Shown here: piece after piece, positions 10,413 to 28,300 of the stretch
How the letters are laid out: every line of letters begins with the position of its first letter
Numbering within the stretch: the first letter of the stretch is position 1
Assembly: GCF_964204645.1 (NCBI RefSeq)
Contig: NC_134031.1
Coordinates: 19,227,910-19,291,909 of the forward strand
Reading direction: 5' to 3'
Origin: Tubulanus polymorphus
Lineage: Eukaryota > Animalia > Nemertea
DNA length: 64,000 nucleotides
The notes under the pieces: generated by a model
The model's input: the letters and a program-made list of their open reading frames with translations, nothing else
Databases searched by the model: none
What the model was told of the DNA's origin: nothing
Program-made: the position numbers and the translations under genes

Positions 10413-11958
10413 CTGCCCGCGTCGATAAACGACAAACCGTTGAATCTGGACACGAACACCTGAAACAAAAATTCATTAAAACGTTGATTTCTTTTTATTC
10501 ATAATTTACCATTTTTAGCTTCCATTGAAATTGTAGAATCTATCGCTTTAATATTAGTTATATATATTCTTTCCCTCTTTGAACGATGCATTTCATCATT
10601 CTTTTAGCCAGGGACATATTTTTGTGATTCTATAGTCAATTCAACAACTAAAGCCCAGTTTTGTGATTTTAAGACCATTCATGGACTACTGTCACAACTG
10701 CGCAACTGGGCCCAGAAAATATTTCCAAGAAATTTATATATTTTCTTTTAGTGATTTGATTTTGACATTAATGATTTTTATTTCCGATTTCTTTTTCGAA
10801 AACACACATACATGTACATGTATATTCCCAAGAGATTTCGACGCATTTTATGCGAATAGGTGAAGGTCTACTTACGCCGAATTCACTACCATATCGCAGT
10901 CATCGAAGATTTCTCTTTCGTAATATAGAGGGCGCACCGTCCAGGGACAGACGGCCCACTGGCAAGGCATATTTTTACTGCAGACGAATTTCTCATTATC
11001 AGTATATTGTTTCTTGTGTTTAATCTAAAAACAAGTATATATATGCACTTCAGAACTACATGTACACAGTGTGGGAAATTCGGCCGTAACGCATTTCACA
11101 TTGTCGGCCATCTTGGAACTAGGCCCGAACTACAGCGACCGTGCTCTCAATCCCGTGGTCGAATATTTCCGGGAAAGAGTTCCGACAAACTGACATTCGG
11201 TTTCACTTTAGTTCTCAAATAGTCGACTATCTCCGATGACCGAAACAGTCGAGATAGTCGACTGTTCGCGAACTAAATAAAACCGAATGTCAGTCGGAAC
11301 AATGGTCCCGATATAGTCGGGATTGAACACGGTCGCTGTGTAGTTCGAACCTAGTTTCAAGATGGCCGAAACTGTGTTAAATGCGTGAAGCTCCGACCAC
11401 TATTCAACTAACTCCGATAACAGAAGTTCGCCCGTGATAGATGGTTTCATCATCCTTACATTGCATCATCCCCGTATGATTCACATACTCTTTAAATGAT
11501 AGGAAAATTCTAATTCAAAGAAATCCACAAAAACCTTTAAACGAATAAATTATGTCGGCGTATCTTTGGAACAAGCCAGTTGAAAGTACGAAAAAATCAC
11601 CACCCAAAAAATGTCTAAAATCTATTTTCAAAATGAAGGTAACCCATGATTAGACTTCATGGCATAATTTCGGTGACGTACTACAAAATTAACTCCTACT
11701 CATAGATATTTCAGATTCTTAGCCACAGCAACCACTTGATATTTCTTACATAATTACGAAAAAAATCCCGAACATCTTTGAAAAAAATAGATTCTGAGAA
11801 AATAGTGACCACAAACATACCTGCGACAAACGTAGAGTGCTAAAACTTTCCACCATCGTACAGCAAAGTACAACAGTGAACAATACTAGAACCAATCCGC
11901 GTCTGGAGTTTCCCAGTAACTTTGGGACAGCGAAACACGACTCAAAATGCGAATACAT
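10369..11958 (-). CDS. Small secreted cysteine-rich protein (125 aa, 8 Cys in mature part), unknown family
   Basis: Exons 11958-11821 (phase 0), 11024-10876 (phase 2) and 10459-10369, with canonical sites (CAG|gtatgt, tttttag|, GC|gtaagt, tttcag|). Product: MYSHFESCFAVPKLLGNSRRGLVLVLFTVVLCCTMVESFSTLRLSQIKHKKQYTDNEKFVCSKNMPCQWAVCPWTVRPLYYEREIFDDCDMVVNSACSCPDSTVCRLSTRAEHTFFTSRIEYLCM*. Hydrophobic signal-like segment and upstream TATA box. Confidence 0.8.
11089..11386. mobile_element. ~300-bp foldback/MITE-like imperfect palindrome in intron
   Basis: Arms pair along the length: ACGCATTT/AAATGCGT, GGCCATCTTG/CAAGATGGCC, CAGCGACCGTG/CACGGTCGCTG, GACATTCGGTTT/AAACCGAATGTC, AGTCGACTATCTC/GAGATAGTCGACT. 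Confidence 0.8.
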
Positions 11959-12054
11959 GCTGGTATAATGATGACGGTAGGTTTCCTACAGGTTTGTGAT
12001 ATGTTTCTCGCTTGTTAAGTCGTTGTAGTTGTTATTGCCCGCACGGTTTCGGCT

Positions 12055-12095: not shown

Positions 12096-14608
12096 CGCGC
12101 TAGCAAAACGCGTAGGTGTCTGACTCGGTCGAAAAGCGCGAATGGTAATCGCTAATTGCTACCGGTGGGTGTGTACTTCGCTCTCTCATGCTCCTGTGGT
12201 CACCAGAGCCCGTGTTAGGCAACATTCAACGCGGGATTCGTGACATTTTCGATGGCTGACAAGATTAAAAGATACCAAATTTAACTTTTGAATTTAACGA
12301 GGGGGGTACGATCATTCCCGAGTGAAACGATACTTAAATATAGGGCAATTAGAGCAAATTGAAAGCCAAATGAAAAGGAAATCAGCCATTTATCTAGCTG
12401 AAATAAACGGTTTTTCTAAGTCTCATTTCTAAGTCTAATCGTATAACATCACGGATTATTTACGCGCAAATATAGATGATAAAACGACGAATGCGAAATT
12501 ATTTGATTCGTCTTTCGTCTTAAAAGGCGAATGGGTTTCTCCAGAATAAACCAACAACCGGTTTACAATCATTCGCTAAGTTTTCCTAAGCTGTTGAAAA
12601 ATGTTCATCCACGCAGTAGAAAAGACAAAGTGCATCATTTATCAATTCGCTTGCAATTTTAACTCTTTACAAACATGACTCGGTTTTGCAGTTTTGAGTA
12701 AAATATGAATAAGTTTATTTCAGTATTATGATCGATATGAAGGACCGGAGCTAACGCATTGAGGCCACATTCTTTACTATAGAGGATTGTTGCGGTTAGT
12801 TTCATGGTCAACGGATATTCCCATAAACCACAATAAAAGCGACTTAATCAGGTCTCAGCGATTAGTTACTAACCATGTTCAAACAACTATACATTTCATT
12901 AGCTACATTTCTCCAAATATGGTAACTTTTCGCATTAACGTCCCATCACACTGCTGACCTAATTCCCCATAAAAGGTCACAGAGCGTTCAGGCGTTCGGT
13001 GGAAAAACGGAGAATTCTTCGATACCACGAAACTGCAGACCGCACTCGAGATGTACGCGGTTGAAGTGTATGGGCTTCAGCGTCTAAACAGTTGTTGTTG
13101 TGAATTATTAATTTGTGGGCGGAAGTAATGAACAGAGCCGGAAAAGGGCCCACCTGCTAAATTCCGTCGGCTGCTAATAGACTCTCCTTAAAAATATACG
13201 TGATAATTCATATTCTTGTAATGGGATTGCTAGCGATGTTTTCTAGGGGTTGTTGCATTGGCCCACGTATATGTACATATACGTCTTCATGCAATATCAG
13301 AAAATATTGCGAATTATATCAAGGAAACTGAACCGTTCGTTGATTTCTTACCGGTAATGAGCCATTGGTATTCGTGGGCCGTTGTTTTCATAATTGTAAA
13401 TTGAAAATTCATTTTTGTATCGTTCTCATTGATAACATCGTTCAGACTGGTTGGAAGAGTGTTTTGAGTGAACCGGAACTGAATTTCCCAATTATGTACT
13501 TTGATTTAAACAAAACATTCTGTCAACTCGACTGCTGATCACACAACTACATGACGTATATCTGTACTTCGATTTCCGATTTAAAAATCAAATCCCCTCT
13601 TTCGTTCACGGCAGGCGTGGTGGGTTTGTTGGGGACACCAAATCAAAAAATCAAATGAAATCTCACCAATCAAATAGATAACAGGGTCAATCCCTATTTT
13701 AAGATAACAAAAATAACTCAGGGTCGAAATTTGTTCATGTACGCGACCGTAATAGAATGTTTCTGTCATATATTCGACCCTGGGATTCTTAACAAGTGCT
13801 CTATGACGTCAACCATCTCAATTAAGTTACAGAAATACGAAACGCCGATTCGAAACAACAAATAGCTAAAACTTCCTGCTGAACTATTGCGTTAAGATGA
13901 TATTGTATGTTATTCACTATGAAAATATTAACGAGCGCCAAAATAATACTCGATATTGATAAAAAACGAATGCAAAATCGATTGTTATACAAGTATTTAG
14001 TTATTTTGATGAATAAATATTATCGTTATTATATATTACTCTATCATTGATATTACACGGACGTTAGTATTTCATCAGCGGTTTATCAACGGACGCTATG
14101 TTTCCCTATATGTGAAGTGTAAAAGTCGATTAATCGGTCGATGTTTATTTTCAAGACGATAAGATGTACTGATCGAAAAGAACAGACCGAACATCTCGAA
14201 CTAAACGATTTACAACATCGTAAATTCAACTGATAGAAATAACGACGGTTATATTGAATGTTTCGATTGATATCGATGTATTTTTCTACATTCTATTGTC
14301 ATCGCCTGATAGAAATCTATAAAGCAATAGCGTTAATATTTCTAAACAAATGTTATCATTTCCTTATCGTTTAAGTATCCAATTTACTGCTGGAAAACGA
14401 GGACAATTTTATGATCGGATATATTTGTGCGAATTGTTATAATCCCATTAAATTGTAGCGTAACAGATGTATTTTTTCTCCCATCGCCAACATCCCGTAG
14501 TTCGCAGTAATTTGTTCACGTTTTCTATTGAAATTTCGTTTTTCGAATAGTTAATGATGCATCAACGTTGTTTGTCGATGGATGAAATTGATTTCATCTG
14601 CACGAAGA

Positions 14609-14689: not shown

Positions 14690-15392
14690 GTAAGTAGATT
14701 TCCGTTTCTTTTTCTTTTTATGTAAATAATAACGTGCAAAATGGCAGAAATGATGGTTGAGAATCGTTCGGTCCGTGATGTGATAAGACAAATTTTAATT
14801 CTAATTCTATTTCAATCGTTATTAATTCGTTCCAAGAGCTGAAACTATTGACCAAATCAATCTTGTAATCAGCCGCATATTTTGATAATGTGTAGGTTAT
14901 TAGGTTTCATTTTCACGACGCCTCAGAATCAGACTTGTCACTCTGCACTGTGTTTGGAAGTTGAATCGTGTTACTTTTTAGGGCGTGCCGCCTTGATTAC
15001 GAGAGTTATATATATATATATATATATGTAATACCCTGTGGCTTCAGGTCACATGAGGGCAATAGATGCCGGAAATAGCGAAATCACAGATGGCAGATCC
15101 CGCACTTTTAGACGTTTAAGAAATTGAAGGTTTATTTATTATCATTCTTAGTCTTCAAGTATATATGGGGTTAATCTTAATCGTATTTTTCGCGGGTTAG
15201 AGCGTGTTTGATGAATCTTTCATTACAGATTAAAAATACGTACAATATACGTACGAAGTAAATAGATGGAAAAGAGATTTATTTTCATGGAAATGTTACA
15301 TCATTGGACGTTATTACAAATATGATTTTTTCAAGATTGTCGATTTTTTTTAAAATAGATTTATACGCGTTCGTGGTACGTAAACCGTGGCA

Positions 15393-15678
15393 ATGAAAGC
15401 GTTTATCGTTCTGTTACTGACCGCGACGTTGGTCATCTGTCACAAAAACGTCGGCGGTACAGCAGTAGGTGGGTATCATTTTAAAATCGTAGCCTTGTAA
15501 AGGAATACAAAAAAATCCAATAGCCATTTAGAATTTGCTCTGATATGAAATTTGGTTTTAAATAGATCTGACGGCTGACGCTGAACACGAAGAGTTTGTT
15601 CGAGACACGGCAACACCGCCACCACCTCCTCCAAATACGGATGTCAACTCACCTGCGCCACCACCTGATGGTAGATAG
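15393..15678 (+). CDS. Small secreted proline-rich peptide precursor (62 aa) with C-terminal Gly-Arg amidation signal
   Basis: Exons 15393-15468 (G|gtgggt, phase 1) and 15566-15678 (ttttaaatag|). Product: MKAFIVLLLTATLVICHKNVGGTAVDLTADAEHEEFVRDTATPPPPPPNTDVNSPAPPPDGR*. Classical signal peptide. AATAAA at 15772-15777. Confidence 0.78.
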
Positions 15679-16541: not shown

Positions 16542-19500
16542 CTAAAACAACGAATGATGCGTAGCGTTCATGAATAACGTCGTAAGTAGTAAGACGAATG
16601 TCGATTGACGCATCCTGTGTGCAGACGATGTGGTTTTTTCGATCCAACTGTTCACAGATGCGTGTAATATATCCAGCGACAACGAACCACCTTTCAACAC
16701 TATATTGTGAAAGTCTTTCACATTGAATTTATCTCCTGCAATATGAAATGAAATCATGATGATGGGCACCGTTAATCGAAAATGCAATCTCTATATCATG
16801 GAAATCCAAATTTTTGTAATGAAGATATTTCAGAATTTCGACATGTTTCCAACTTTTTCCGTCGGGCCAGTAATCTCTTATAAAGAAATTCGTGAAATTT
16901 GGATTACATTTATATCAGGCTGCCATGTGGGATTTTTCCCAAGTCTTGGCAACATGTTGTCCAATATTGCACAAAGCCATTTAATGCGAAATTGGGGTAT
17001 TGAAATGAAAAAATATTGATTTTCAACTATTTACCTAGGGCTTGTTCTGCCCGTCTGCGCATTTTGAGTATTTGTAATTCGCCGACTTTGTACGCGCATG
17101 CCTGACCAGGCCACGTGATGTATCGATCGATTTCGACCTCGATCTGGTGTAGGGGGTCTGTAAGTCTATCCGATAGGTAATTGATAGCCTCCTGTCTCGT
17201 CCAACTGTAACAGATTCAAAGATCAACAATCAATTCAAATAAAAATAATCCACGAAGCAGAGATCTGAAAATGTTTAGCATATTTGAATATTCAAATATG
17301 AAAACATAAGATATTCAAATTTGAATAATTTATGTTTTCATATTGATGGGATCAAATTTCAAATTTTAATGAGATTCAATGTATAAATAAAATACATTTA
17401 ACTCCATAGAGATGAATTAAGCAATAAACATGAAATAAGAGAAACTGATAATTCATTTTTTTTCGAGACAATCATGAATTATATACCATCATTTAACCTT
17501 TAGGACACAGTTCCACAGTTGTGAGTTAGAGTTAACTCTGAGTTAAAGTTTGTTCATTTTCAATGAGTTAACTCAGAGTTAAAACTCGGAACTTTTGGAC
17601 TGGGTCCAGGAGAAAATGTGTTAATTGAGTGAATTAAGTTCAATTATCAAGTTTTTCATATGAGTTCAAAATTCTGTTTGTGCACCAGATAACATGGATA
17701 ATGTTCGCGATTAATTGAAAGGTCCAATAAATGTTTTGTACAGAAGAGTAAATTAGAACGTACTTCTTGTAGTGCAAACCGGTGTCAACGACTAAGCGAC
17801 AAGCTCTAAACATTTCAGACACATAGCGACCAAACCTGAAAAAAAAACAGAACGCAAAATACATGTTCTGTACTTGTGAACGGAAAAATATGAGAGAAAT
17901 CACAATTCAGCCAAAGGCCGTTAGGCTAAAGATAGCCATTAGCAGGCAGTACGCGAAATGATAGTCTTTATCCGAAACGTTGCTCAAAATATACCGTCTT
18001 TCATTCAGGACCTTTATTATCTTTGGCTGAATTATTGTGGGATTTCTCTCGTATAGTCATCTAATACTGATATTGCGTAATCTCTTCTAATAAGACTTAT
18101 CAGTGATGAGATATACTCACAATTCGTACGGATATTCGTAAAGACCTAACTCTTTACCTAGATATTCGGCGTAAAGCCCCCATCCCTGCGGAAACAACGT
18201 TCAAAGATGATATAAAAAACTTTGATATGAAATCCTACACTAAGAATGAAAACATCCAATGAGTCCAAAATGTTTTCTTGAGCTAGCAGTTTATTCAACG
18301 TTTCCATTCAAATGATTACTTAAAGATTGTACGTAATTAAACCTGGCTACAATATTGTGGGAATTGTGTAGCGATTTTGTCCACTTACCTCGGTATAGGA
18401 TGTGCCAAACGGGAATTGAAATGGGACGGCGTAATAGTTTCTGTAGTCGACGAATTTTCTGAATTTCGGTAAATCGGCCAGCAACATGACACTGATCTAT
18501 AATCAATTTGAAGGATGTGAAATGGTAATCAGTTTCATATGCATGTTATTTTCAAATTCGTAGTAAATGAATACCTGCATGTGATGTCCGGGATCAGCCT
18601 CGTGAAGACAGAGCGCCAACATGTCAAAAGTCGGCCTAGAAAATGTTTTAAAAAACGATCAATTATCAGCTCAGAATATTGCTTGCGATATGATTACACG
18701 AGGTTAATCATAATAACGTTTACAGAGGAATTCGATACAAGAAAACGTGCATGAAACAATCGAAGATTTGAGAGAAAGTTTTTGAGTATGATTACACAGG
18801 ATCTAGTAATACATGAAGTGGGTTTAGAACAAACATTTAGAAACTGAAAAAAACCAAAATGCACTAAATGCGTAACAACTACAGAAAAACAGTCGTATAA
18901 TTTATTTTAATATGCTGGTATCATCTGCTGCCTGTAACCATGATCCCCTCATAAAAATCATCATTTGATGGGCAAACCCTAGGTCATGACAATCTGACTT
19001 TCCATGTATGTTGATTGATCGCTATGTCAATGAGTCAGCAATTCATTTTCATATGAAATGTAAAAGATCAGTTTTTGTAGATGGCTGTAGTCAGTCGATT
19101 ATGTGAGAGAGTCTGGGTACAATGCAACAGATTGATATCTGCAGCAATTATCGATTCGATATTTCTAGAGTTAAATCATTCGAGAGAAGATCCGGATGAA
19201 ATTCGGGCAGTTTTATCTTTTCCGAACAACACGGTTTAGTAGTATACCTTTTATCGGGTTGAAATACGTTCGCTACGAATACGCCTGGTACCTTCCCATC
19301 TGCGGATACGTCATAATACATTCCACCGGGTTCATCTGGTGATTCGGATGCTTTGACACTGTTGCCCGATATTCATCAATATATACAATAGATATACACA
19401 GTAAACAAACGATTAGTATTTCAGATGAATCAGTCTCAATCCGTTACAGGGATCGAGAGTAGAAGATAACTTTAGCAGCAATCATCCGCAGAACGAAGGG

Positions 19501-22500
19501 GAGGAAGACACGAAAAGTTTTTATTAGAATGTGTTCATGTTTGGTAGACAAATTCCAACTAGTTTTGAGCCAGAAGATTTTGTAAGTAAACTTTTTAGGT
19601 CTTGGCCCCACATCGAGAAAAGATATTCAAAAATTGGCTAGGAAGATACTAATCATAAGCAATAACCTTGCGTAATGGTGGAATATGTATTTCCGGTTAT
19701 TGTGCGCGCAACCCCCCCTGGCCAACGCCTTGTTAGTGGTCAAACAATCGAACGATAAGCGATACGGCGTTCGCTTAGAGTTCTGTGGTCAAACGCATCA
19801 TCTTATGGCAAGCGTCCAATACTGACGGGTAAACAAACGAACTATTTTATAGGGGGATAGTTAGGAAAACCTAAGGAAAGAAAATAACGTGCGGTTAAAA
19901 AGACTCAAACAATGATGTTACAGATGATACAACATAAACGGATACAAGAAACTATTAACATACGTAATATAGCATCAACACATCACATGCATTGCTTACT
20001 ACATGTAATACCTTTTATGGGGGTCATGAGTATTGATCAATAAATGGGACCGAATTTTGCCATCTGCCGAACCGCGCATGTACATGGCTAACGGGGCATT
20101 CTTGTCACCTGATGTTATACTGTATAAAAGTATTTATGCATTTATATATTCAACGTTTTTCTGTCGACAAAAACTGGTAATCTCCTGGGTCCAGTTCCAC
20201 AGTACCGAGTTTAGATGTAATAACTCTGAGTTAACTCATTGATAATGAACTAACTTTAACTCGGAGTTAACTCTTACTCACAACTGTGGAACTGGGTCCT
20301 GGGATTTAGTTTCAAAATCGAAGTCAAAGCGGAATTTAAAACACGTGACGCTTAAGTTTGGCCAGGCGTCAATATCATTTATGCTCAAATCATCTTATTC
20401 ATATTACTTACATCAATGGTAAATTCGGAATATCTTCTTTATGGAAAACCTTCGGCAATGTTTGTTTTGTTCGGTTGAAAATGATGTTTCTGTATTCGTT
20501 CAAAAGATCTTCCTAAAATGATAGTGGCTATAAACACACCGTGGATTCTGACAATGTATCACATATTTTCTTACTCCAATTCATCGTGATAACGACCTAA
20601 CCCTGCTCCGAGACTGCCCCGGAATTTGTGACCTTTGAAGAGAATTTGTTGGTCTCGGGAATTCAAGGCAAGCAGTCTACCGCATACAATTCTAGTTAAA
20701 AGCTCAATCTTCATTGGTGAATTATTTTACCTTCGTTTTCAGAAAGAATCGAGGCTGTTCCTTTAAATGGTTGATGAATTCTTTGATAGTTCCCTTGAAC
20801 TGAACGCCTTCCATGATCTTGAAAATAAAAGCAGAAAGCACAAAGTTCCCCAATGGTTGGGATATGTCAAAAGGGACCCCGATTTTTTTGAATCTTCCTA
20901 TGCAAATGGTTATTTCTTTGTTTGTATGTTTTTGCTTCGCCTCGTTTGGACCTCAATTCTCGAAGTCTAACTCTAAAGGATTGTGTATATTCAACCTAAG
21001 GCTCTACGGCCTTTGAAGTGTTGCCCGCACCAGGACTCGAACCCACTTGTCACTCAGCATTGATAAAGATTGATAGCATCACACCCTATCACACTCATTG
21101 AGCTACCGGGGTCGCTTTTTTATACATCTGAAATTGTCCCTTTTCCCTGGGATACGTTGACTAGAGGTGTTCAACCAGATTCAGAATAATCCCCTTGGAT
21201 TTCACTCGCGTATCGACGACAACGATAAAAATGAACTGTGATGGCGGAAGCGCACACTTCAACATTAGTCCCATATCACTAATGCCTTCGAAAAGAGAAG
21301 AGAACCATTAGGACTGATTTTCTGTGATCTTCTTAACGAATTCACGCCGGCGTTTCTTTTTCTGAGAAATATCTATCAACGTAAATGCTTCGGCAGAATC
21401 GCGCCGTCAGATTAATTCCGACGGCACCTGTGTCCATGCGTTGTGCCATACTACCCGGCACGCTCGTCTCCATACAACATACGAACTAAACTTAATCCCG
21501 CGCGGATAAAACGGCCAAATGAAACAGCCATTTCAGCCGCGACAGGAGATTTTGTATCGTGTTTGACAAGCGCAAGCACGTGATTGAATTCGACCAATAG
21601 GAGCGAGCAGCGGTGAGAGGAGCGCAGAATCATAGAGGTTTTACAGCCATGTTTTTCGATTTGACTACGTCATATTGGTTGGATAAAGTGATTCACATCA
21701 CAGACTCTCTGTTCGTATATATCTAGGATCCAGTTCCAAAATTGGGTTCACATTCGACTCTAAAGTTAAAAACATTGAAAATGAACAAATCCTAACCCAA
21801 AGTTAACGACTGTGACACTAGATCCTGATTATCTTGTTATGAACGGCAAGTGTCCAGCACAGGTTGGTAAACGAACGATGACGTCACACGCTAGCAGACG
21901 ACATGGAGGATCGAATGATTGCATTGAACTAGAAAATGGCGACGAAACTTCAATCGATAAACATGATCTAATCAAATAATTAAATTAGCGCAGTTATAGA
22001 TCACGCTGTTGCATATGTACCTTGTGCATCTCTGCTGCAATACGGGCGACCTCAGAATGTCCCAGTTCGTGTACTTTATCGGGAGTCATATCCGTAGAGA
22101 GGTGCCATTTCAATGCGGCCTCGTAATATTCAGCGCCCCCTGGTAGGCTCGACACGCCGTATCCGTTCCGTGTGTTTGACAAATATTTCTAGAAAAATGG
22201 AGTACAATTGAGTCGTTACTGTACTGAGTTTCTTAGTTTTTCTTGATAATTGTGGGTTTCTTCTTCAATTTAATCATAGACAATCACTTTTCATAGACCA
22301 AGATCATGTCTATGGGAACCAGTATTTTGCAGATAGCTATTAATGATAGGATGTTAAAAGCTCGATGAACTAAACGGTTACATACACACCTGACTGATGT
22401 ATTCTGAAAGGTTTCTAAAAGCTCCGTAGATTTCATTTCGAATTATTCCCTTAGCCTTCATTCGTAACTGTTCCCTAATGCAAAAAGAAGGTTTTGTACT

Positions 22501-25339
22501 TTTGCGTTATGTCTGTTGTAAAACCTTTTTCATAAAAAGATATGATCATTTCGGAATCAAGATTAACCCTGTAGTGAGGACATACTTGTATGTACTGTTA
22601 ACCATCGTTAACGCATCCAGCGTTTTATTAAACGGGGTGTAGAGATAGAAACTGGTCGGCTGAATGGCCAAAATCTTCTGGATTTGTCCCGGAACCAGTT
22701 TCTGAAAAAAGAACCGTATGCAATAATTGCGTTCAGAAAATCAGATTACAATTCGTCAAAAACCTACTGTGATTATTTCTAAAAAATAACAAACTTTTAT
22801 CACTAGTTTTCCGGTTAAGGATTGATATTTAACCCTCAAAAAGATATTTGAAACCACTGATACAATGTTGATTGATTCACAGTCGAAATTGCACGGCGAG
22901 GAACTAGGTCATCCAATGCATCAACGTCAAATAAATCTATCAATTACTCACAATTGAAACAGCGTGCATTGTCTTTTTAACTTTAACGGCTTCTTCGAGC
23001 AAGTCTTGCGTTTCTTTTATCTAGAATATGTACGTTAAAAGTTATTTTTATGAATTTGGATTCGAACCGCAACGTGGCGGTTTAGTCGGATCCGGAAGCG
23101 TTGCATTGCGCCATCTTGTAACACGCCTGTTTACCTGTTGCGCGATCGCGGACATTCTTTTCAAAAACGTGAGAAAATCGTTCACCGTGTTAAAAGGTGT
23201 AAGAGACAATAGTGAATTGTGCCCCTTTTGTGGTCCCTCTAAAAAGTTGATGGCGTTGTAGGTGAACCTGCAAAATATACACAAAGAGATAGGTATAGAT
23301 TTAAGATTTCCTCGGTGTGGGAAAATGATAATTCCTAACGCTGACTTACTCTTTATATTTGTGACCCTGCGTGTACGTTAACAGTGTGTTCTGAAGCACT
23401 TCGTAGTTCATTTTATCTTTAGGCGCCAATAAATTGGGATCAATTGATTTAATATCCCGTAAAAATGCATCAATTTCCAACTGTATCAAAACAAAAAGAT
23501 CTGAAAAACTATTTTGATAAAATCAAGTCCCCAATTCGCGTATTTCCATGAAGATCTTAGGCAATTTTTATATTTTTCAAGAACTGTAGACTAGACAAGT
23601 TGACATTTAGGATAATATTACGTATACGAGCTTAAAAGATTTATTTTTTGTTTGATGATGTAAAGTAAAGGGCTACCTTCCTTCGATCGAATGTTGCCAA
23701 AGTCAATGACTCAACTCGATCATTGAATTCATGCTCGCCAATACCAGTAGCGAATAACGGGTACTCTTTTATTCTCCATTGCCAGAACCGTTCAATCAAT
23801 TCGTCCACTGCTTGTTTAGCGCTATCTGAAATATCACCATCATGTTCTATTTCAAGATAAAAATTCTGGGAGACAATTTTAGATAAAATCACCCACGTTG
23901 CTGGCGGCGTTCGAGAGCGCTGATGGAAAAAGCGAATCGAAGCCTGTTGAACAAACAATAATTTAAAAAGTGTTCGTAAAACGTTGTTTCAAGTCGGAGC
24001 CTCCCCCGACAAGAACTTCCGAGAATCTGTCTCCTGGTAATGTAGAGATCGGAGACTCATCGGTAATCGAATAGAATCGCCTCTAATGGAACGGATTCAG
24101 GATGAGTGATATTTTGTAATTTTTTCCCCTGGTGAATGTTTTGCCTTATCGGATTAAAAGTATGAAGTATGGGCCTAAAAGCCGGCGCTTTGATCATCGA
24201 CGGTGCATCCGTTATTCGCTTCTGTAACGTCGGATTGACAAGACGCGGAAGTGAAAGTAACGACCGAAGCGCACGCGCGTTGACATGGCCACCATGTCGT
24301 GACGTGACCGACCGGATGCGTGTACGACAGCTTTCAGAATAAAACAATTACGAACGGAGTTGTATTGACACTTGGTGCTGTTTATCCGTGGCGCGCGATT
24401 GAAAGGATGTTCATCTATTTTCGATGCGATGCGAAATAAATCTTCGGAGATTCGATTACAACACGCGAGAGTGGATAAATCAACTACACTTTCCTCGTGC
24501 ATACAACCGACCGACTAAATTATGAATAATATTTCCCCCGAAGCTTTATTGTCACACGTCGCCGCCTGCTGAAATTTATAACCGACAAACGCTTCAAAGT
24601 AACGAAATGATAAGCCACGAAATTGCCGAAATGCGGCACGGAATGAACTAACCTATATGAGGTCGTGGAAACGGTTCAAATAACCATGTTACATTACTAA
24701 ATATCGTTGATTTAAACTCTCGAAAACAAGAATTCAGAGTACAGTTTTACGAGAAATTTAACCTCAAAATTTTGGTTCAATTGTTACTGGTTACTTCATG
24801 TTTTCATTAAGGACAGCCATTCAAACTTAACCATTTAGGCTAAGACCTTTTCATGAAACTGGACCCTGAGCAGATATTCTTCATTACAAATCTATTCCAT
24901 TTTTGTTTATGGTTTCTGGACGGTATTGAATGCTGGCGTACCTCGGGGAAAACGTTAAAAAGGCGACGATACGTTGAACGAATGAAATGAAGAAAGAAAT
25001 TTGTTTTAAAAATTAATCGTTACAAATTAAGAAGTGCCTTATTTAAGTATAGACAATAGACTGACAAGCATCTTATATCTAAGGAATTAGTTTCACAAAA
25101 AGGATTTACTCTTTACAATGGATTTGATATCGATTGAATAAATGAAGAAATTGAGTCAAAACATTGAATCAACTAAACTTTTTTCATCGAAATTCGCGTG
25201 ATCCCGATAGTGTAAAGCGCTAGCGATTCCCCGCGGAGTCACTGAGAAATAAACTTCAATATTTACCTGCTGCGGTTGAGATGGTAACTGCTGTACACAT
25301 CACACACAAAATAAACACGGCCATTTTTTTCGGAAACAT
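16542..25339 (-). CDS. DUF885-family putative zinc metallopeptidase, signal peptide plus GPI-like C-terminus (~630 aa, 17 coding exons per isoform)
   Basis: Phase-consistent exons: 25339-25267 (MFPKKMAVFILCVMCTAVTISTAA), 23825-23677, 23480-23350, 23267-23135, 23020-22952, 22701-22586, 22474-22390, 22188-22021, 20817-20731, 20512-20412, [20119-20012 or 19358-19248], 18635-18575, 18496-18389, 18185-18121, 17835-17764, 17204-17035, 16735-16542. DUF885 motifs: LPGGAEYY, TPDKVHELGHSEVARI, LHEADPGHHMQ, YTEGWGLYAEYLG, RACRLVVDTGLH, EIDRYITWPGQACAYKVG, FNVKDFHNIVLKGG. The exact exon 2 acceptor is uncertain. Confidence 0.92.
17502..17609. mobile_element. ~110-bp palindromic MITE, family A (TIR GGACCCAGTTCCACAG)
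   Basis: Terminal inverted repeats and internal GAGTTAACTC palindromes. Related copies at ~20185-20301, 21724-21827, 54409-54533, 55305-55390 and 58752-58840. Confidence 0.75.
19248..19358 (-). CDS. DUF885 gene alternative exon 11B
   Basis: caacag| ... |gtatac, phase 2-2, 111 nt, encodes VKASESPDEPGGMYYDVSADGKVPGVFVANVFQPDKR. Closer to the DUF885 consensus (Y..S.DG.RPG.F..N). Confidence 0.85.
20012..20119 (-). CDS. DUF885 gene alternative exon 11A
   Basis: ttttatacag| ... |gtatta, phase 2-2, 108 nt, encodes ITSGDKNAPLAMYMRGSADGKIRSHLLINTHDPHKR. Homologous to exon 11B. Confidence 0.75.
20185..20301. mobile_element. MITE family A copy
   Basis: CTGGGTCCAGTTCCACAG...CTGTGGAACTGGGTCCTG; opposite orientation to the 17502 copy. 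Confidence 0.75.
21022..21113 (-). mobile_element. tRNA-derived SINE head or tRNA pseudogene
   Basis: Minus strand GACCCCGGTAGCTCAATG (A box) ... GTGGGTTCGAGTCCTGGTGCGGGCA (B box). The anticodon arm does not form a canonical cloverleaf. Confidence 0.55.
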
Positions 25340-28300
25340 CTTTGACTGACAAAATAAAACAATATATAACTGTAGAAAGAAGAGAAGGCGTTCGGTGAAA
25401 TATTGTACAACATGTTCATAGTGTTTACATAGTTAGAACTTGACTGAAGTTTGACAAGACGTGGCTTCGTTTGGAGTCGTGGAACAGAAAACAATAAATA
25501 GTTGAGAAGTTACTCATAACAGCGGCGGGTATATTGAAATATGTACTAAGCAGTTATTTTTGAATGATAAGGGTGAGGATAACAAGACCCCTTTATTTGA
25601 ACGGTTATCAAACATAAAACGTATCATATTATCCTATCCTCTTACACATGAAAATAACTGAAGCTAGGTTTATAGACTAAGTATTGGCATAGGTTGCGTA
25701 TAGGGGTCCTGTTCATTACATATCAATACCTGCGACATCCCAGTATATGAGATGATAGTTTCAAAAATCAAAAATATATAATATCCACGGATAAGAGCCT
25801 ATACTACCTAACCTTACACGTTAGTGGAGTAGACGTTGATTCAAATTGGAGAACGTTACGATGGTTGCATTCATATTTAAGTCAATCGTTGTTGTTTTTG
25901 TACTTACCCTTCCCGGGACGCGTATATTGTACGAATCACAGGTCAATTTACAATCTAAACCTATCCGTAGACATTGGCGTCGCTATCTTACGGTGAAACC
26001 CGATACTTAGATTTATATGAACAGCTCTTTGTCTCTCGATGTCACGATGTAGATAACTTTACAGACACATATATATGTACATACAGGTACAAGTCGCTCG
26101 TGACGATAACATTAAGTATTTACATTGGCTTCGAAATGTCGTATCGATAACCAGGGATATTTTGATGTTAAACTGTGGGTTATTCAGTGGTTAAAAAAAC
26201 ACGGGTTCTCCGGGGTTAAAGATAGCACACATAGGTACGTTAACTATATATGGCGATATACATTTCACTACGTTATGAATTATCGTTAGTATAATTACAT
26301 TTTTGACCTCGGTCGTTTCTGGGTTACTCGAACATCATCTGAATTTATATATATACGCAAATTTGTCCAGATATACATGTATATACATATATACTAAACA
26401 CTAACATGCATCATCCATTCATGAAACACTCCGAGTCCGCGTCGAAGGATAATACGAAAATCCAAGACTAAGTGTGAAAAAAGGGAGTCGTCATCTTCAG
26501 AAATGCTGCGGTAGAAGGATCTATTCGAAATGCGAATAGAAATTTGCTCGAGGAAACATTTCGAACTGGTTTTTTTTAGTATATTCTTAGTATAGGATTT
26601 CATATAACCAAACTACAGGTTTTCAGACTGATTTTTTTTCCATACAAACACGTGTCATTAATCCACGTCAAATAGATCTTTTGTTCGTAGACGTTTCGTT
26701 TTCTAAAATGACGTAATCTATAGTGATACATAACGCATATCTAGGACACATGTAGATGCAGTGTTTTGACGGCGGTGTCATTAAAACGTTCACACAGTCA
26801 CCGATAGGGGTCTCTGTTTATTTTCCTTTCTCGCAATAGAACGGTTGAAATATTACATCAGCCCACTTTCAATTATTAACACCCCATCAATCATTCCTAA
26901 TCATTTTTTTCCAGTATCAATTCCAATAACGAACATTAAATATTTAACAATAATCAAGACCTCCGCGCAGAAATCGGTTCAATAAGAAGATGTTTGACGA
27001 ATAGGAAATACGCGCTTTCTTAACGTGCGCGTTGTTGCGCCCTGCCGTGCACAGCAACTTGTGATAAGTCAAATCGCTCCTTATTAATTAACACGGAATG
27101 AGCTAATATTCAATACCCTACTAATACTATACAGATATCGGGTGAGATGATATGGTTTCTAGGTCTGGAAATATTTCATCTGTCACGGGAGTTGGCCAGA
27201 TACGTGATCAGGCTGTTAAACGTGGCTATACCCCTCTGGCTAACTACTCACGTATGCGAAGAGGTTGTCAGGATTACACACCACTATATCGTCTTAAGCT
27301 AATTGGAAAATTGGTTGCCATTTCTTGCCGATAAACGAATAGTCGCAACATCCCAGGCTATACTGCAATAGATACCGTTTTCGCGTGACTGACGCCGTTT
27401 TAACGGCCAACCCCGAAGGGGTTTGAATGACCGATTCAAGAAATATACAAATGACTAGAGTATTTTTTGTTGTTATTCACGCTGCATGAGTCCAACACTG
27501 GCGGTAAAACAAACTATAACATCACGTATGTAATCTCTAGTGGTTCCACTTTCACGCGGTCGTTGAGAGTAAAATTCCACTAAATTTGTAAATGAACAAC
27601 ATTTGAAACAGATTTCGGTGTGATACTGGTCCCAGTGGGTCACTAAGGGCTAGGATATAGTTCCACAGTTTCGGGTTGACTGTGGAGTTGGATTTATCAA
27701 TTTTCGACTATAACAACCAAAAACTGCGTGGAACTCATAGACCCTATTTAAACGATGATTGAGTTACCACTTAAAGTTGTTAAGTCTTAAACTGTTTTTA
27801 TGCTGCATCTTTAGTTTGTATCCTTTTACTTGCCTTCCTAAAGATGGCAGGATAAAATCGAATCGTCGAATCAAGCGTTAGCTCAAGGAAACATTTTCCC
27901 ACTCATTTTAGTCTAAGCGTGAGATTGTATATTATCGTTAGTATAACACGGCCAGAGTGTTTCATCATTGGTTATTACCACCGTCACACTTCGACTCATT
28001 TGAATTATTTTAGCATTTTTGATTATTGCGCAACGAAATTGCTACGAATCCGAAATTTGAGCAATTTGTTCTGTTTCTGCCACGGGTTTCACACGGCATT
28101 CGCGATGGAGGTTCGGATGACTCTGTCACATCTGAGAAATTCTTTCCTTCGACGAAAATTGCAGCAACGGAATAATGATCGTGTCCCTAATTTCAGAGCC
28201 TAGAAATCGACTTAACAAGCAGCGTTACAAAGAACCTGTCGAACAAGACAGATTGGTCTAAAATACCAAGTAGTAAGGACTAATTTATACAGAGAAATTG

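Follow-up and report, generated by a model that had tools for sequence, protein, structure and literature searches.

Clusters of mutually exclusive exons that arose by tandem exon duplication have been described by Pillmann et al. 2011 (PMC3228551) and Hatje et al. 2017 (PMC5740500), and the myosin heavy chain and Dscam genes are examples of such clusters (PMC3228551). Mutually exclusive exons are thus already known as a class, and for the particular swap considered here there is a database precedent in Lineus longissimus. We describe two homologous, neighbouring exons, 11A and 11B, in a gene of the nemertean Tubulanus polymorphus whose product belongs to the DUF885 family (PF05960). The gene, LOC141908764, lies on the minus strand of the window, by which we mean the whole stretch of 64,000 nucleotides of contig NC_134031.1 that was analysed. 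We consider it probable that the two exons constitute a two-member cluster of alternative exons, generated by tandem duplication and spliced in mutually exclusive fashion.

In the proposed mechanism, 11A and 11B would each encode the whole of a three-stranded sheet just before the HExxPGHH catalytic helix, and this sheet would be the only one in an otherwise helical, gluzincin-like protein. Exon 11B would be the canonical, default version. With 11A included, the sheet that lines the active-site cleft would be exchanged for another, giving rise to a second isoform of the enzyme-like protein, probably restricted to certain tissues, stages or conditions. Such an exchange might change substrate preference or specificity.

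Members of the family are present in the venom proteome of a spider (PMC7682650), a venom study on a predatory snail lists the family among its uncharacterised transcripts (PMC11359391), and one DUF885 protein has been flagged by a zinc-site predictor (PMC12572635). No paper on the splicing, activity or substrate of the family was found in the searchable literature. An earlier interpretation of this DNA, made without database searches and referred to below as the sequence-only reading, had stated that no exon switch of this kind was known to be described for animal DUF885 genes. This holds for papers, none having been found, but not for databases, where RefSeq lists the Lineus isoforms discussed below.

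Two versions of exon 11 in the Tubulanus DUF885 gene

Matches to the PF05960 profile, obtained exon by exon, reach 73.7 and 52.4 bits (curated cut-off 32.4), and the same domain is precomputed for P0002, one of the two RefSeq proteins mapped on the window (P0002 and P0151). A profile-free search with one conserved exon as the query returned a 630-aa protein, 98% identical, which is isoform X2 of LOC141908764. The gene has 17 coding exons as annotated, to which the unannotated exon 11A is to be added, and the sole difference between its isoforms X1 and X2 is five N-terminal residues.

The anatomy of the region was read base by base on the minus strand of positions 18500–20600, and the resulting coordinates are collected in Table 1. 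Exon 11A is flanked by AG at 20121–20120 and GT at 20011–20010, and exon 11B by AG at 19360–19359 and GT at 19247–19246. In each case an ATT codon begun in exon 10 is finished by the first base of the exon and the last two bases (AG) form AGG with exon 12, so that 11A and 11B, with one base at the start and two at the end, have the same phase. Both exons are translated without stops.

Table 1. Coordinates of the exons and other features; positions refer to the window except where locus L009 is named
Feature	Position	Strand	Basis and remarks
DUF885 gene, coding span	16545..25345	-	PF05960 matches exon by exon and RefSeq proteins P0002/P0151 mapped on the window
Exon 10, constitutive, upstream of the pair	20412..20512	-	Exact match to P0151 residues 343-375; donor GAT/gtaagt
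Exon 11A, unannotated, diverged alternative beta-sheet exon, 108 nt	20012..20119	-	AG/GT sites, open frame, homology to 11B
Intron between 11A and 11B, 653 nt	19359..20011	-	Coordinates from minus-strand reading
Exon 11B, canonical version, 111 nt	19248..19358	-	Present in each of the four RefSeq protein records (isoforms X1 and X2)
Exon 12, end of catalytic helix with HEADPGHH	18575..18635	-	AG precedes start at 18635
MITE-like inverted-repeat element in the intron between exons 10 and 11A	20184..20302	.	27-nt arms, 78% complementary
Lineus exon 11, first version, 108 nt	L009 10209-10316		AG/GT sites
Lineus exon 11, middle version, 108 nt	L009 11744-11851		AG/GT sites
Lineus exon 11, last version, 111 nt	L009 12364-12474		AG/GT sites

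In a single BLASTP comparison the 11A and 11B peptides share 11 identities over 29 positions (E = 7e-7). When the peptides of the 18 exons were compared with the 10.5-kb gene region, the match between 11A and 11B, extending over 33 residues, was the only non-self match at E <= 0.01; the next-best one covered 10 residues with E = 0.068. No third copy of exon 11 was found in the introns flanking the pair. The sequence-only reading had laid out exon 10, 11A, 11B and the HEADPGHH exon in this order with GT–AG boundaries and a common phase, and had taken 11A and 11B to be homologous. The base-by-base reading agrees with that layout, the translations of both exons are identical to the peptides given there, and the homology is borne out by the BLASTP comparison and by the uniqueness of the match within the gene.

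The two copies have diverged extensively. Identity at codon positions 1, 2 and 3 is 0.54, 0.54 and 0.34, respectively (random expectation 25%), the proportion of synonymous differences (pS) is 0.74, which is saturated, against a nonsynonymous proportion (pN) of 0.46, and 7 of the 12 identical residues are encoded by different codons. The saturated synonymous divergence indicates that the copies are old. Despite this divergence, the frame of 11A is unbroken, its two splice sites are retained and the three-strand hydrophobic pattern persists. Three exon-11 positions are conserved in at least 90% of 90 homologues (Y385, G396 and N401), and 11A keeps the Y and the N; in 11B the family motifs PGG.Y and DG..PG.F..N are present. 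Exon 11A departs from the family consensus no more than the annotated Lineus variant exons do, and by this sequence comparison its distance from the consensus is no evidence of decay.

Sequencing runs were mapped to positions 16900–22800. Four of them are classed as DNA because introns and exons are covered alike, and the fifth (run X5) is a guessed RNA run; the only joints seen in these runs are repeat-derived. Run X1 contains a second haplotype that differs at 14 positions across 19018–20252. Thirteen of these single-nucleotide polymorphisms (SNPs) fall in about 1 kb of intron; the remaining one, at 20074 in 11A, is a synonymous change in the third position of an Arg codon, and 11B has none. 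These numbers are too small for a test of constraint. The intact frame, sites and motifs of 11A, together with its weak acceptor (see below), favour a functional exon, 35 codons being no proof.

Place of exon 11 in the protein fold

An AlphaFold2 (AF2) model of the RefSeq protein, which carries 11B, was built with the 90 homologues and has a predicted local distance difference test score (pLDDT) of 96.2 and a predicted template modelling score (pTM) of 0.92. The modelled protein is all-helical save for one three-stranded sheet, with strands at residues 370–374, 383–386 and 396–400. This sheet is exactly exon 11 (residues 371–408), and the helix that comes directly after it in the model, residues 410–420, ends with H419–E420. 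The sequence-only reading had placed the strands of exon 11 just before the catalytic helix, and this is where the model puts them. H419, E420, P423, G424, H425 and E464 are invariant in the 90 homologues, and the metal motif has the spacing HExxPGH, not HExxH.

A Foldseek comparison of the model with 3O0Y gives E = 1.5e-28 and template modelling (TM) scores of 0.79/0.85 (range 0.79–0.86), and 3IUK and 3U24 match too; the Tubulanus model has the fold of the solved DUF885 proteins. The exon 11B motif, PGG.Y ... DG..PG ... N, aligns to bacterial 3O0Y. Unlike the Tubulanus gene, those of the bacterial 3O0Y, 3IUK and 3U24 proteins are single-exon and have no isoforms. Matches to folds of the M3, M2 and M32 families are weak (E about 1e-3, TM 0.2–0.36) and include oligopeptidase F, thimet oligopeptidase, neurolysin, ACE/ACE2 and M32 carboxypeptidases. 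In M3, M2 and M32 folds, the wall of the substrate channel includes a small sheet next to the catalytic helix. The structural premise of the sequence-only reading, that the segment preceding the catalytic helix lines the substrate cleft, is therefore reasonable.

Duplicated exons in other animal DUF885 genes

Among the proteins of the collection, that of Lineus longissimus LOC135501568 is the nearest relative, with 49% identity. Its 90%-identity cluster contains five RefSeq isoforms, and three of these, X1, X2 and X3 (P0267, P0154 and P0269), differ solely in 36–37 residues that correspond to exon 11, each isoform containing one version. The three versions have the same phase as the Tubulanus pair and are flanked by homologues of exons 10 and 12. 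As in Tubulanus, a canonical version is accompanied by diverged ones. The arrays differ in that Lineus has three versions and Tubulanus two, the canonical version is the middle one in Lineus and the last in Tubulanus, and all three Lineus versions are annotated as isoforms whereas 11A is unannotated. When the Lineus X3 isoform, which contains a variant exon, is modelled, the same sheet is obtained (pLDDT 94/90/83), a result that the alignment may drive.

The middle Lineus exon, which follows the family consensus, shares 42% identity with 11B. Identity is 35% between the first Lineus exon and 11A, and likewise 35% between 11A and 11B. In a maximum-likelihood tree of 27 exon-11 segments, 11A is joined by the Lineus exon in first position (support 82/69) and next by the one in last position (84/84), and the three of them sit on long branches. 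It is possible, judging from these sequences, that 11A is orthologous to the Lineus variant in first position. Two further proteins, P0016 and P0194, were considered as close relatives and rejected, being intronless open reading frames of other organisms.

The Tubulanus DUF885 protein has hydrophobic N- and C-termini, and the signal-like N-terminal stretch together with the hydrophobic C-terminal one suggests a secreted or membrane-tethered protein. In Lineus isoform X5 (P0268), a short hydrophilic end replaces the hydrophobic C-terminal tail, which suggests that a soluble form may exist besides the tethered one. A second DUF885 gene is located 18.8 Mb away on the same Tubulanus chromosome (G000:C7:437500-443600, covered by L007 and L008). 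In this paralogue exon 11 has only one counterpart, which is of the 11B type and lies about 68 nt from the catalytic exon.

Tandem duplications were also observed elsewhere in the family. In the hemichordate Glandiceps talaboti LOC144440994 (L011), there are four tandem HExxPGHH exons (11864–12049, 13418–13591, 14931–15122 and 16678–16860), of which three are open and the fourth is decayed, with 3 stops in 61 codons; the RefSeq isoforms X1 and X2 use different HExxPGHH copies. A later exon of the same gene is also duplicated (L011 18370–18555 and 19839–20012). In the chiton Liolophura sinensis LOC135479048 (L010), the exon after the catalytic exon occurs twice (15384–15494 and 15552–15662), and RefSeq isoform X1 has one copy where X2 has the other. 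The Liolophura copies are about 57 nt apart, which makes steric exclusion plausible for this pair. Both genes resemble the Tubulanus gene in belonging to the same family and in having tandem duplicates around the catalytic motif, and their RefSeq isoforms exchange copies; they differ in that other exons have been multiplied and exon 11 is single. We also note that the gene model of the annelid Owenia fusiformis P0178 contains two HEANPGHH motifs 58 residues apart, where both copies of a duplicated catalytic exon have probably been joined.

From these gene structures, tandem alternative exons around the active site appear as a recurrent feature of animal DUF885 genes. The wider proposition, that animal DUF885 genes have repeatedly evolved active-site exon arrays by which one gene would make enzymes with different clefts, with 11A as a functional but unannotated member, is one on which we regard the balance as even.

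Possible choice between 11A and 11B

The polypyrimidine tracts preceding 11A and 11B are the weakest in the gene, at 0.52 and 0.43, against 0.61–0.83 for the others (16 acceptors checked). Weak acceptors are as expected for regulated exons, of which they are typical. The intron between 11A and 11B is long enough for splicing, so steric exclusion does not apply to this pair. The intron upstream of 11A contains an inverted-repeat element resembling a miniature inverted-repeat transposable element (MITE; Table 1), and a MITE-like element is also present at 17500–17583 in another intron of the gene. Contig depth over the MITE-like element is 10^4–10^5 in the DNA runs, against about 30 elsewhere, and such depth assigns it to a very abundant repeat family.

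The sequence-only reading had proposed exon switching as the source of two isoforms. In favour of this, the exons are true tandem duplicates, their splice sites are compatible and the orthologous Lineus isoforms swap the same exon; the RefSeq records bear out the 11B path only. That 11A is spliced in Tubulanus, and that 11A and 11B exclude each other, we infer from these features, and a number of observations weigh against it. Each of the four RefSeq protein records of LOC141908764, which represent two isoforms, contains 11B, and since both isoforms carry it, 11A is not annotated. The 90%-identity cluster of P0002 consists only of the two 11B isoforms. Neither the 11A open frame nor P0002:335-470 gave a hit in word searches, an outcome that the length window of the search makes uninformative, and no contig of the guessed RNA run falls on the gene, which says nothing on expression. 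No transcript with 11A was found among these records and runs. The PG motif of 11A is without its near-invariant G, and the GG before the conserved Y is missing as well. Moreover, the selection argument on 11A covers only 35 codons. The grouping of 11A with Lineus exons may be a consequence of long-branch attraction, and approximately unbiased (AU) tests reject neither a Tubulanus-only clade (p = 0.365) nor a Lineus-only clade (p = 0.506); given the long branches and these tests, an array inherited from a nemertean ancestor and two separate origins both stand. The reading frame gives no guard either. Because 108 and 111 nt are both multiples of three, it does not enforce exclusivity: the frame is kept both when the two exons are included together (junction codon AGT) and when both are skipped (ATG), and there is consequently no nonsense-mediated safeguard against either. 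Finally, inverted-repeat scans in Tubulanus and Lineus revealed no convincing docking/selector pairing or competing RNA structure, only short AT-rich pairs. Among these, 19195–19209 and 19363–19377 flank 11B and are complementary at 13 of 15 positions, with one arm on the weak acceptor region; this pairing could loop out 11B and is within the noise of the scan. In Lineus, the acceptor region of exon 12 has two complementary sites, which are again not convincing.

Several of these points would be accounted for if 11A were a relic, once used or never fixed, that is no longer spliced in any meaningful way, leaving the 11B isoform as the only product. The uniform use of 11B in the RefSeq records, the failure to find an 11A product in the protein collections searched and the loss from 11A of GG and PG motifs conserved from bacteria to animals are all in keeping with this, as is the finding that, among human exons predicted by the same sequence criteria, only a minority have been validated as mutually exclusive (PMC5740500); the decayed Glandiceps copy indicates that relics do occur in the DUF885 family. 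We nevertheless consider a relic unlikely. Exon 11A is open, with an exact AG and GT and no frameshift, despite saturated synonymous divergence. By an estimate from the 38% GC content, 36 random AT-rich codons would be open about 9% of the time, and retention of the four splice-site bases under such divergence is rarer still than a chance open frame. The annotation treats Lineus variants of equal divergence as used, and the sole SNP in 11A is synonymous, though one site proves little.

Both exons could also be real without being exclusive, 11A being a cassette included in frame together with 11B, or both being skipped. The frame compatibility of the exons, an intervening intron of a length that permits 11A–11B splicing and the failure of the inverted-repeat scans to reveal a mechanism of exclusion are all compatible with this arrangement. 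An extra or a lost three-stranded sheet would, however, disrupt a compact and confidently modelled fold, and each annotated Lineus isoform has one version, though the Lineus exons are also multiples of three, so that non-exclusive splicing is in our view distinctly improbable. Least credible of all is that 11A is an intronic stretch left open by chance, with a fortuitous AG and GT, a reading which has to recommend it only the shortness of the exon (36 codons) and its modest identity to 11B (35–38%). The match to 11B is the sole non-self match in the gene, extends in the same phase over almost all of the exon and has its boundaries at homologous positions, and the same exon has been multiplied in the Lineus orthologue. 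Alternative exons from a tandem duplication, probably used one at a time, account best for the pair.

Comparison with known exon clusters

If 11A is used, one gene would give two versions of an uncharacterised, conserved metallopeptidase-like protein that differ in a whole cleft-lining sheet, and the two would be a natural variant pair for finding what DUF885 proteins cut. The Tubulanus annotation is probably one isoform short. Taken with the Lineus, chiton and hemichordate genes, the Tubulanus pair would point to recurrent diversification of the active site by exon swapping in marine invertebrates, of which we found no mention in the searchable literature.

In structure the pair resembles the described clusters of mutually exclusive exons (PMC3228551, PMC5740500). 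The two are internal exons of roughly equal length that lie next to each other, one intron apart; they share a reading frame and have compatible AG...GT splice sites; and they are homologous and encode the same structural element, which for 11A is deduced by alignment only. At the RNA level, such clusters are further defined by junction reads that run from each exon past the other to the flanking exons, and by the absence of reads that connect the two. A difference concerns the reading frame. In 28 human and Drosophila orthologous genes with validated exons, 71% are frame-incompatible (PMC5740500), and joint inclusion there would lead to a frameshift, whereas the Tubulanus pair is frame-compatible.

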